A stretch of DNA of 64,000 nucleotides, from NCBI GenBank assembly GCA_965240325.2, contig OZ251230.1, forward strand, positions 1,860,001 to 1,924,000, given 5' to 3'. Shown piece by piece: positions 14,686 through 42,377 of the stretch (position 1 is its first letter; every line of letters starts with the position of its first letter). This stretch comes from Rebecca billardiae RCC1528 (lineage: Eukaryota; Protista; Haptophyta). The translations under genes and the position numbers were made by a program. The notes beneath the pieces are model-generated. The model saw only the letters and a list, made by a program, of their open reading frames with translations. It was not told the origin of the DNA and did not search any database.

Positions 14686-16805
14686 TGGCCCGCGGTGCAG
14701 GGCGGAGCGCGTAGCGTGGAGCCCCACCGGGGGCCCTCACTAAGTTACTTGAGTCACTACGTTGTCAAAAAGATCTTTTGATCAAAGAAAAGGGGACGGG
14801 GGACGATTTTTAGGGTTGTTGGAGGGTGAGTTTTCGATTTTTTGAGGGGTACGGTACAATGCTGTCCATCCCAAGCTTAAAAGGCCGCGCCCGGGTCATT
14901 TCGCGTATGTCGTTGGACGGCCGTCACATTGTCAGTAAACGAATCTGCGCCATTGGGTAATGCCCGGGGCCGGACTCCGCCCAGCACCAGACAACAGTGA
15001 TCCACTCCGGACTGGGCGGTCCGGCGATCGCTCCCGGCGATGAGTCGATGACCAGTGGACCTCTCGACCCGCAGTCAAACGCCGGCGACGCGGCGCGGGC
15101 GCGCAAGACAGATCAGAAATCCTGATTCCTGGACGCGCACGCGAACCGGCTCGGCATGCGGAACGCGTTGATGCGCTTGGGGACGCACGACATCGGGCCG
15201 TTCTGAAACGACACCGGGCGAAACTCTACCGCGTGCACGCGCGGACCGGCGGACCGCAGGCCGCGGCGTGACGACTGCGACACTGCGCGACGCGAAGGAG
15301 CAGGTGCTGGCGCCGCAGATGGCGGTGCGGGCGTTCTGCCCGAGCTGCAACAACCCGCTGCTCTCGGGCCAGGTGCATCAGCGCATCCAGGACCGCCGCT
15401 GCCACGTGCTAACCAAGGTGGTGGGCAAGTTGCGTGCGCCGAAGACACTACGCGACCGTGTGCGAGCAAGGCGTGCCAAGATGATCGACACGGCGAAGCA
15501 GGTGGTGATCGAGGCGCTGAGCCTGATCATGGTGAGGCGCATCTTCTCGACCTGCCCGACGCGCAGACCACGCAGGCGTCGCTTCCGGGCGCGTGGGACT
15601 CGCGCACCAAGACGGTGTGGCGCGTGGACCCTGTCGCCAAGGCGGTCAACTCCGCCTGGCCGCTGGAGGTGGTCGCTCGCCGCGCCTGGCCAACCTGGTG
15701 CACGAGGGGCCAGCTGATGGCGGCGGTGGTGCCACCGATGAAGCTGATCTTCGTGCAGCGCAAGGACGCGTCGGGCCCGTTCTCCCACGTGCTCAAGATC
15801 GTCTTCCGCGTCGCGACGATGAGCGTCGCTGCTCTGTGCGCGGCGCGCGCGCGCGCGCGCGCGCGCGACGGGCACGTGGCGCGCCGACCAGCCGTACGGC
15901 GCTGACTGTTGACGCACCTCGCGCATGCGCTACCCCGGCCGCGCCGCCGCCGCCGCCGCGCAGGCATGCTCTCGTAGGAGGAGACGGCGGAGCTGCGCGC
16001 ACACATGGCCGCGCGCGGCTCTCGGTCGGACGGTCGGCGATCACGGGCGCGCTGCCGGCCCGGCGCGCCGCTGAACGACGAGTAGGCCGCGCTGGAGGAG
16101 TACGTCCGCCGCCGCGCTCCGCCTGCGCGAGCAGCGCTCCGCCGCGCCCGACCCGCTGGCCGAGCAGCTGCGCAGCGACCGCGCCATCGCAGAGCAGCTG
16201 CAGCGCGAGGAGATGGCGGCACGCGCGGGCGGCGCGCCCGTGACGCTGCACTCGGCCGAGGTCGACGAGGACGCGCAGATGGCGCTGGCGCTGCTGCTCG
16301 TGTGCGAGGCGTGCGACCAGGACACACGCGCGCTGCGCAACGCTGAGCGCCGGATCCGTTTTCGGCGCCGTAAGGTGCGCAAGGCGCTGGCAGCGGAGCG
16401 CACCGGGGCGGCGGCGCATGCGCGCACGCGGCGCGCTCGCGGTCGATGCGCGGCAACTCCAACCGCCTCGGCAAGCGCAAGCAGCGGGACGATGGCGGCG
16501 CCGCGGCGGCGGGTGCGATGAACAAATCGGACGAGCGCGCCAAGTCCCGACGCATCGCCAACGCCGCCAAGCTGTTCGAGGACATGGACGGCGACGAGAT
16601 CGCGGCCGCGGCGCACGCGGCGGGCAAGCTGGACTGCCAACTTGCGACGCGTCTCGCAGACTGCCACTGCCACTGGGCCTGGCCCATTATAAATCTTCAT
16701 ACGACATTGAGCAGCTACGACATTGAGCAGCCGAGCAGCCGACGGAGGGTGCACCGCGGGCCCCTAACTGCGTTGGTTCTACGGAAGGACCGCGGAACGC
16801 GGTCA
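14686..16805 (+). mobile_element. Rolling-circle-like element, family A (diverged 2.1-kb copy with decayed cargo ORF)
   Basis: Starts A|TGGCCCGCGGTGCA. Inverted copy TGCACCGCGGGCC at 16750-16762, hairpin GACCGCG-GAA-CGCGGTC at 16788-16804, end TCA|T. Both ends match the elements at 37892-40936 and 41086-42377. Confidence 0.8.
15126..16726 (+). pseudogene. Frameshifted cargo gene of unknown function inside the element
   Basis: Coding-like fragments in several frames (FCPSCNN; DRAIAEQLQREE; DEDAQMALAL; CEAC) broken by stops and frameshifts. Confidence 0.5.
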
Positions 16806-17005
16806 TATACTATTAGTCTAATTATTACTATCATACGATGCCAGATTGCCAGCACTGCAGCAGGCCAGCCAGCAGCGGGCGGCAGCGGGCGCGGCAGACC
16901 GCAGTACTTAGCCGCACGGTATGTATGAGTCATCTGACATCTCGGCAGCCGCATCAGTAATTCAGTAGTAGTATAATCTGAGTAGTATATTTCTGAGTAC
17001 TCATG

Positions 17006-17583
17006 CAGGCGGCAATAATCGCGGGCAATAAGGAGCTGTCGTCACGTTAAGAAACTGGGGCTTGCTGCTATCTGCGGATCTGGCCTAGATTCTAGAAACT
17101 GAGACTAGCGATTGGCTGGTTCGCTATACGCATAGTCACGACACTAAGAAACCGGGACTAGCTACTGTCGTCGCGGCTGACCGGACGGAGTGGTCCGCCG
17201 AGGCGCAGTGCCCGTGGGACGCGGCGCGCGGCCCGACTACGAGTACAGGCCACGTCCCGACTCCTCTGATGACTGACTCCTGGACAGTGCACCGCGGCAT
17301 CCATGCAACATCGTTACAGTGCCAGAGTTGCTCCAAAATGGCCCATCAAAAAGTCATTAATTTCGTCGGCCTCGCCAGCCGGGCCTTTGAAAGACTCAGT
17401 GGGGGGCTCTGCCCCCCTGCCGCCCCTGCGCCCCCCGCGCCTGCGCGGCGGGCGGACCTATAGCGCTAATAAGAAACTGAGACTCCGTAGGCACTCGACC
17501 TACACCGAATGACGGCTAAGAAACCGAGACTACTGTAGCCGCAGTGAGATCTGCTCTGACTTCTTATTGCCCGCGATTGCCTG
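17006..17583. mobile_element. MITE with CAGGC...GCCTG termini
   Basis: TIR core AATCGCGGGCAATAAG (17017-17032) is inverted at 17563-17578. Five same-strand TA(A)GAAACYGRG motifs and an internal GGGGGG-CTCTG-CCCCCC hairpin. Confidence 0.7.
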
Positions 17584-17656
17584 TAGTGCATTGATCATCG
17601 GACTGTTCGACATCAGCCACGGTCAACTGCTACTGCTATAATTCGATGACGATACG

Positions 17657-40800: not shown

Positions 40801-40936
40801 AAAAATCGCCCCCCGTCCCTTTTTTTCCGCCGCCCCCCGTCCCTTTTTTCTTGACGATCAAAGATCTTTTTGAAACGTGGTTCGGGCCCGCTGGTGCGGG
40901 CTCCACGCTGCGCGCTCCGCCCTGCACCGCGGGCCA
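37892..40936 (-). mobile_element. Rolling-circle-like element, family A, interrupted by a nested family B element
   Basis: On +: A|TGACCGCG-TTC-CGCGGTC hairpin at 37893-37909, GGCCCGCGGTG at 37939-37949, other end CACCGCGGGCCA|T at 40936. Without the nested insert it is 1292 bp, the same length as 41086-42377. Confidence 0.9.
38020..39772 (-). mobile_element. Rolling-circle-like element, family B (nested, 1753 bp)
   Basis: On +: A|TGATCGGC-TAC-GCCGATC hairpin (38021-38037), CAACGAAGTTG, GGCGCACGGCCC (38064-38075) inverted at 39760-39771, end GCGCCA|T. It is absent from the sister copy, which reads GAATAT-AAGCT at 41210-41219. Confidence 0.88.
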
Positions 40937-41085
40937 TAAGCCGATCATAATAAGCTATCGGCATCGACCGTCCGAACTACTCGCTCATTAGTCGTCGTCA
41001 GTACGTACTCGATCAATAGCTACTCGTAATTCTCGAGTACTCCCGGATGCGGCGCAGCTGATACAATATATTATGACCGCGGAAA

Positions 41086-42377
41086 TGACCGCGTTCCGCG
41101 GTCCTTTTCTGCATAGAATCAACGCAGTTGGGGGCCCGCGGTGGCCGTGCAATCGCGGCTCTCCGCCGTAGTTGCAGTTCGCCAGTTGAAGTCGGTTCTG
41201 AGATGACTGAATATAAGCTATTACTAGTCCGACCGTCGCCCTGCCTGCGCGACCGCGAGACTCATTCACACTTCACACAATCACAGCAGCGGACCTGAGA
41301 CCGCACCCGGCACCGGTCGTCAAATCGGACGTCCGTCTGACAACTAGCTGCCAAATGTCCAACTGGCTGATCAGCTCGGATCCGACCCGTCCGCGATCGT
41401 GCCATCGGCATCGGAATTACTACTAGTAGCTGCCAAACTGTGTCCAACTCTGGCTGATCAGCTCGGATCCGACCCGTCCGCGATCGTGCCGAGTGAGTCG
41501 TGCCGCGGAGCTCGGAGTACTGAAGGAGTCGGGTGTGACAGCAGGGTGCTTTAGCGCTGCGGCCCGTGCCAGCCAACGACCAGACGTACTCTGGCCACTT
41601 GACCCGTTGCACGGGTGAGTGACCGTACGCCCTGCCTAGTGCCTACCGCGCGCGCCGCGCGACCGGCGACTCGGGGTGATGGAGAGCGGATGGCGACAGC
41701 AGCAGCAGTCCTCATGAAGACGATGAAACTGGCGGCACGGGTGCACGAGGTGGCAGGCGAAAGCGCGCCGACGAGACCGCATTTGACACACCTGAGCCGC
41801 ACGCGCGTGCCGTCGCCGAGCCGGCGAGCGCTGCAAACGCGCAACCGTACCGCGCGCGCCACGACGGCGCGGCACTAGCTGATGCAGGCCGTACTGCCGG
41901 CACTGCTTCTGCGATCATGCGCCACGGTCGCAGCTGACTGCGTGAGCAGCAAGCGGGAGGCGGGTCCGGAGGCACGTGCAGGCGCCGTCCCGCATCCGAC
42001 GCCATCGTGCCGGGGCACGTCACCTCCGACGATCCGGATGTGGCCCAGTCCGGACGTCACGCGATCCGGGACGACGAATACGATTCGCTCGTATAACGAA
42101 CCGTTACGCTAAAGTCACGTCCGGCTGACGTCCAGATCGCACTTTACTTATAGGGAATATCGTGGGCGCGCTCTTTTTCGGCCTAATAGACCTCTCTATG
42201 CGATCTCAAAAACTCGAAACTCGGTCTCCGCCAGCCCTAAATAAAAATCGCCCCCCGGGCCCGTCCCTTTTTTTCGCCCCCCGTCCCTTTTTTCTTGATC
42301 AAAGATCTTTTTGAAACGTGGTTCGGGCCCGCTGGTGCGGGCTCCACGCTGCGCGCTCCGCCCTGCACCGCGGGCCA
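41086..42377 (-). mobile_element. Rolling-circle-like element, family A (uninterrupted 1292-bp copy)
   Basis: Same termini as 37892-40936 and near-identical over its first ~900 bp. Contains an internal ~85-bp-period direct repeat (GGCTGATCAGCTCGGATCCGACCCGTCCGCGATCGTGCC x2). Confidence 0.92.

Follow-up and report, generated by a model that had tools for sequence, protein, structure and literature searches.

The window analysed here is a stretch of 64,000 nucleotides from the haptophyte Rebecca billardiae RCC1528 (GenBank assembly GCA_965240325.2, contig OZ251230.1, positions 1,860,001 to 1,924,000 of the forward strand), and our subject is a set of four transposable elements within it, called here A1, A2, A3 and B. 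An initial annotation of the sequence had delimited the four by their ends, and every position proved exact when the letters of the window were read again. Our analysis argues that they are non-autonomous rolling-circle transposons of the Helitron2 type (HLE2), with two families of ends, which would be mobilised in trans by a Rep-helicase (RepHel) whose gene lies in another part of the genome. We give this reading a probability of about 0.78. The elements are as follows.

14686-16805, plus strand: A1, 2120 nt, with family A ends and an interior of its own that holds a decayed open reading frame (ORF)
37892-40936, minus strand: A2, own length 1292 nt, split by element B after A2 nucleotide 1164
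38020-39772, minus strand: B, 1753 nt, with the second family of ends, nested within A2 at GCTTA^TATTC
41086-42377, minus strand: A3, 1292 nt, the unbroken sister of A2, 149 nt apart from it and in the same orientation

All four copies start A|TGG and finish TCA|T. They represent three sequence types but two end types, since family A ends surround two unrelated interiors, one of 2120 nt (A1) and one of 1292 nt (A2 and A3). A+T makes up 53-75% of the 60-nt flanks of each copy; the window as a whole has 68% G+C, and just 1.5% of its 60-nt stretches reach 60% A+T.

The ends follow a common plan. An asymmetric repeat, perfect over 13, 11, 11 and 12 bp in A1, A2, A3 and B, begins 1 nt inside the 5' end of every element, the first base being T, and its inverted copy ends 43, 47, 47 and 44 nt before the 3' end. 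The motif AACTnCGTTG sits 3 nt past the 3' repeat in all four elements, and 12-16 nt beyond the motif lies a hairpin of 7 bp with a GAA or GTA loop, which ends 1 nt before the terminus; the 3' repeat thus lies 25-29 nt ahead of this hairpin. A degenerate pattern of the 3' end, derived from the same four ends that it matches, occurs four times in the window and in none of 100 dinucleotide shuffles. The initial annotation did not report a further hairpin, present at the 5' end of every copy, that uses the 5' repeat as its left arm. Compared with shuffled sequences, the 5' hairpin folds clearly in family A (z -2.5 and -3.05), where it has an inner GNA triloop. The parts of the ends are located as follows, together with the site in A3 that corresponds to the insertion of B in A2.

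14687-14699, plus strand: A1 5' asymmetric repeat of 13 bp, which forms the left arm of the hairpin at that end
14687-14735, plus strand: A1 5' hairpin, inner GTA triloop, z -2.5
14765-14811, plus strand: A1 conserved block past the 5' hairpin, common to A2 and A3, degenerate in B
16750-16762, plus strand: A1 3' asymmetric repeat (inverted copy)
16766-16775, plus strand: A1 AACTnCGTTG motif, a short AAC-TnC-GTT palindrome
16788-16804, plus strand: A1 3' terminal hairpin, 7-bp stem, GAA loop
40885-40935, minus strand: A2 5' repeat (40925-40935) and 5' hairpin, GCA triloop, z -3.05
37893-37949, minus strand: A2 3' end, with inverted repeat (37939-37949), motif (37926-37935) and hairpin (37893-37909)
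39714-39771, minus strand: B 5' repeat (39760-39771) and a weaker 5' hairpin with a C-run/G-run stem, z -1.7
38021-38075, minus strand: B 3' end, with inverted repeat (38064-38075), motif (38051-38060) and hairpin (38021-38037, GTA loop)
41087-41143, minus strand: A3 3' end, with inverted repeat (41133-41143), motif (41120-41129) and hairpin (41087-41103)
41074-41085, minus strand: 12-nt tail of A3, with a second TCA|T at its end
41213-41214, minus strand: empty A^T site in A3, counterpart of the B insertion in A2

A comparison of families A and B shows changes in 3 of the hairpin's 7 pairs and, among the first 11 positions of the repeat, in 4; in both structures the pairing is preserved. This agrees with the claim that structure had been kept through compensatory changes, which draws on just two independent lineages. 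The two end families are probably related, given that the block directly past the 5' hairpin is common to A1, A2 and A3 and, in degenerate form, to B. Terminal inverted repeats are absent from every copy, with 3-4 of the 12 terminal bases matching, and the only direct repeat common to both junctions of all copies is AT; longer junction matches of 3-4 nt differ from copy to copy and stem from the A+T-rich flanks. The tail of A3, which is not seen in the other copies, holds an inverted copy of the left hairpin arm plus loop and may be a template-switch scar of termination. A search of Rfam found nothing. Taken together, the design of the ends, the pattern match compared with shuffles and the A+T-rich flanks indicate that the feature is real and well formed.

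A possible third asymmetric-end element lies at 1468-1905 on the minus strand. Its inverted pair of 18 bp occupies about 1888-1905 and 1527-1544, and its hairpin of 8 bp ends CCA|T; the 5' end lacks A|T and the flanks are not A+T-rich. Part of its interior (1656-1749) recurs at 59868-59968 with 82% identity.

The nesting of B within A2 shows what an insertion does to its target. The empty site in A3 reads GCTTA^TATTC and, compared with the filled site in A2, no bases have been added or lost beyond the shared AT; all four copies sit in an A^T target. A2 and A3 differ at 53 positions, all within alignment columns 79-391, and are identical over a block of about 910 nt. Because of this identity, the insertion of B is placed after the last copying or homogenisation of the block. 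The variable part is about 310 nt long and about 83% alike in the two copies (40546-40857 and 41987-42298), and its A3 variant was also found in a public sequencing run (X2, described below), so that subfamilies exchange 5' segments. The confinement of the differences to one block likewise marks the family, as judged from the alignment, as a mosaic.

Contigs from three public runs, belonging to three studies (X1, X2 and X3), cover the elements and leave the flanking DNA nearly uncovered. In X2, alignments stop with other flanks at the predicted boundaries 42378 and 41085 (family A) and 38019 (B). Three contigs of X1 stop near 40939, again with other flanks, and have an upstream TTA in common. 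The boundaries fall at the same A and T as in the window, and contigs from all three runs cross the B site without B, with small differences nearby. Since the same boundaries occur with other flanks, the families are multicopy and occupy various A+T-rich sites; with the unique flanks uncovered, the contigs speak to this multicopy state and not to presence or absence at the loci of the window. One window protein was also matched in Logan contigs of ERR14847148 and ERR14847150.

In the description of Helitron2 by Bao and Jurka (2013, PMC3627910), the asymmetric repeats measure 8-15 bp; the 5' copy lies 0-2 nt from a 5' T and is used in a hairpin, and the 3' copy, about 20-30 bp from the end, precedes a 3' hairpin. 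Compensatory changes were found between related families. The elements of the window share with Helitron2/HLE2 (PMC3627910; Li et al. 2024, PMC11417382) the 5' T, the repeats of 11-13 bp at offset 1, a 5' hairpin that uses the repeat, a 3' hairpin that follows the 3' repeat, and compensatory changes between families. Helitron2 elements make no target duplication, and the empty site, to which no base has been added, would fit this within the AT ambiguity discussed below. The elements differ in their A^T target, which is not T^T or TTTT^T/C, in a 3' repeat that lies 43-47 nt from the end, in a hairpin 1 nt from the end and in that no RepHel, which in autonomous HLE2 elements unites DUF6570, Rep and PIF1, was seen. 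That spacing falls within the range of HINEs, which are non-autonomous Helentrons with subterminal repeats of 12-15 bp located 38-60 bp from the 3' end and a palindrome 8-35 bp inside (Thomas et al. 2014, PMC4067079). Like HINE/DINE-1 elements, the copies studied here are non-coding, with subterminal repeats and a 3' palindrome, and under the HINE family rule of an identical repeat of at least 11 bp (PMC4067079), A1, A2 and A3 fall into one family and B into a second. HINEs enter T-rich TT sites in which the number of T varies, unlike the present elements, and no partner with an endonuclease domain was found for the latter.

FoHeli1 and FoHeli2 of Fusarium oxysporum, which belong to HLE2, carry asymmetric repeats of 12 bp at a distance of 38-51 bp from the 3' end; joined-end circles of FoHeli1 have been detected by polymerase chain reaction (PMC5148889). 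Hairpins at both ends (with GAA loops at the FoHeli 5' end) and a non-TT target are common to FoHeli1/2 and the elements of the window; however, FoHeli1/2 start TCAG, end ATTTT and have a 3' hairpin that is not terminal (PMC5148889). They insert between TNAT and A, or T according to a figure legend (PMC5148889). HLE2 generally targets T^T and HLE1 A^T, but FoHeli1/2 already break the TT rule, which is typical and not universal. With Helitron1/HLE1 the present elements share the A^T target, the 5' T and a 3' purine past the hairpin; HLE1 likewise makes no duplication, which the empty site would fit under the same AT ambiguity. They lack the 5' TC and 3' CTRR of that group, which itself has neither asymmetric repeats nor a 5' hairpin. 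The initial annotation was right that the ends are not the canonical TC...CTRR of Helitrons, as they read TG at the 5' side and GTCA or ATCA at the 3' side.

On the structure of the ends alone, membership in HLE2 is likely. An origin by rolling-circle (HUH) transposition, as first proposed, is the best reading. The suggestion of a possibly undescribed group has weakened, because with the 5' hairpin included the ends match the description of Helitron2, and their repeat spacing is one that HINEs and FoHeli also show. The A^T target and a hairpin flush with the end are the features that stay unusual.

By analogy with the Helitron model, an HUH Rep would nick a single strand at the 5' A^T and keep the T on a tyrosine while a helicase displaces the strand. 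The 3' asymmetric repeat would then pair with the 5' repeat and replace the 5' hairpin, as Bao and Jurka proposed for Helitron2, so that the repeat pairing and the terminal GNA hairpin would mark the stop point. A second cut at CA^T would free a circle joined TCA|TGG for insertion at another A^T, and a single kind of A^T bond would serve as start, stop and target. GNA triloops are stable DNA mini-hairpins, and their presence at both ends suits single-stranded DNA. The chemistry of these steps comes from the Helitron model, and what our data contribute is the architecture, the lack of added bases beyond AT, the multiple sites, the nesting and the lack of a transposase inside the elements.

In the search for a partner enzyme, Pfam scans of 20 long ORFs and ORF pieces of the window gave no match to domains of the HUH, helicase, recombinase, DDE or Fanzor types. 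Probes for HLE2 RepHel proteins gave no match to the window by tblastn, the best E value being 0.013, outside the elements. The expectation that the autonomous partner lies outside the window is thus upheld by both approaches. The probes were obtained by scanning for the Helitron HUH motif, and the true HLE2 RepHels came from eukaryotic contaminants of metagenome-assembled genomes (MAGs). In viral contigs the motif returned prokaryote- or phage-type Reps or nothing, and the terminal DNA patterns gave nothing in viral contigs or prokaryotic genomes. Three metagenome matches to the terminal pattern were rejected as chance, lacking the repeat and the full hairpin, and a generic scan for a repeat plus hairpin was swamped by GC-rich noise. 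Homologs of the RepHel probes were fungal, animal, dinoflagellate or unnamed proteins, none of them named as haptophyte. Two RepHel loci (L043 and L044) share no termini with the elements; a third (L045) was given a loose scan alone.

Several observations were made in passing on the contigs searched. Many prokaryotic MAGs (GTDB contigs L026-L042) hold eukaryotic HLE2 RepHel contigs as contamination, and the dinoflagellate relatives of one contaminant RepHel (P0083-P0118) mostly lack a Pfam PIF1 call. The metagenome contig L044 encodes, at 1972-10374, a Helitron RepHel of 2618 amino acids that ends about 500 nt before a TTAGGG telomere array, which recalls the telomere-capping Helitrons of Paramecium.

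Several points weigh against a Helitron2-type origin. The A^T target departs from the T^T that is general in HLE2, and the hairpin stands 1 nt from the end as compared with 8-35 bp in HINEs. The 5' hairpin of B is weak (z -1.7), with 11 of 200 shuffles folding equally well. No circle joint was seen in the contigs of the public runs, a poor test for one, and no RepHel locus with these ends was found in the collections searched (viral, prokaryotic, metagenome and RepHel homolog loci). Furthermore, an element TGG...TCA in A^T and an element GG...TC with a 2-bp AT duplication give identical letters. This last ambiguity is what makes two of the alternatives formally admissible. A DDE cut-and-paste transposon of the PHIS/ISL2EU kind, whose terminal repeats had decayed and which duplicated 2 bp (AT) of its target, would be a valid parse of the junctions, and AT duplications are known from ISL2EU. 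However, terminal inverted repeats are missing from every copy, and decay does not explain this, because A2 shares about 910 identical nt with A3; in addition, both families have an inverted copy 43-47 nt inside the end. We consider it the least probable of the explanations weighed. A GG...TC element integrated from a circular intermediate by a tyrosine recombinase, in the manner of Cryptons, would fit the empty site with AT as a 2-nt overlap, and would not need the terminal inverted repeats that are absent here. Nevertheless, paired hairpins together with asymmetric repeats are the kind of single-strand signal that typifies Helitron2, and the Pfam scans of window ORFs detected no recombinase. 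To our knowledge, Crypton ends have longer direct repeats and no such hairpins, and a literature search returned nothing on point. A Crypton-like origin is accordingly very improbable.

The elements could also be rolling-circle transposons moved by a different HUH enzyme, be it a helicase-less Helitron-type Rep, a CRESS-type Rep, a Replitron-like protein or a RepHel outside HLE1 and HLE2. The combination of Helitron2 repeats with the A^T target of Helitron1 speaks for this, as does the existence of a third Helitron clade in Paramecium, and Replitrons are tentatively present in haptophytes (Craig 2023, PMC10288648). Replitrons are HUH copy-and-paste elements with non-autonomous partners, but they are defined by short direct terminal repeats, and their founder, which inserts after RG, has fuzzy ends and duplications that vary (PMC10288648). 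The present elements have precise ends with inverted asymmetric repeats, and AT alone is repeated. A Replitron reading, like the Crypton one, fits worse than Helitron2. It seems unlikely, then, that another HUH enzyme moves these elements; equally doubtful is that a haptophyte rolling-circle lineage outside HLE1/HLE2, or one with a helicase-less or CRESS-type Rep, has joined Helitron2-style repeats to Helitron1-style A^T chemistry. An LTR (long terminal repeat) retrotransposon or solo LTR was rejected: TG...CA ends are present, but LTRs are missing and so is, at the empty site, a duplication of 4-6 bp.

The interior of A1 carries an ORF-like remnant.

15268-16691, plus strand: decayed, frameshifted ORF-like cargo of A1, in at least four pieces (15268-15561, 15558-15839, 16144-16407 and 16446-16691)

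The first piece (15268-15561) has a CxxC motif, and Atlas offered for it a weak Rpr2/RPP21-like lead (an RNase P/MRP subunit) with a score of 0.88, which Pfam did not confirm. A phmmer search of this piece against 1.84 billion proteins gave no match, Atlas returned nothing for the second piece, and the ORF has no match to RepHel. Its interpretation as a remnant of DUF6570 was rejected, no match having been obtained to a small home-made profile. The later pieces show, by eye, short stretches resembling ubiquitin-interacting motifs. Helitrons often carry captured host sequence, and this decayed ORF may be such a capture.

The remainder of the window holds further repeats and genes. A young copia-type LTR retrotransposon lies at 52559-55979 on the plus strand, within a (TA)n microsatellite; it has an ORF of 861 amino acids with RVT_2 and two identical LTRs of about 395 nt with TG...CA ends. 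At 26849-29034 there is a non-coding element of about 2.2 kb with TA flanks and perfect terminal inverted repeats of about 29 bp that start CAGGCTGG, which looks like a non-autonomous element of the Tc1/mariner/pogo type; a long near-perfect DNA palindrome (26748-26808) adjoins it. The minus strand carries at 46141-47751 a gene of the nucleoside-hydrolase family (IU_nuc_hydro), whose best named homologue, from Pavlovales sp. CCMP2436, is 55% identical; judged by this one gene, the host probably belongs to the Pavlovales. A 600-nt direct duplication with 90% identity (21839-22447 and 24487-25086) lies in a region of ankyrin genes, and a 219-nt inverted duplication with 92% identity (63299-63517 and 63786-64000) closes the window.

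The four elements combine known Helitron2 ends with a Helitron1-type A^T target, and are a modest variation on a known design. No new class is opened by them unless the partner enzyme proves unusual. HELIANO can filter HLE1 from HLE2 by the rule of A^T versus T^T. These copies show that the rule has exceptions, and with the filter on, the program would miss or misfile them. Their short, precise ends, in two families with compensatory changes, are substrates for testing whether repeat pairing sets the stop point, and they extend the Helitron2 end design to a Pavlovales-type haptophyte.

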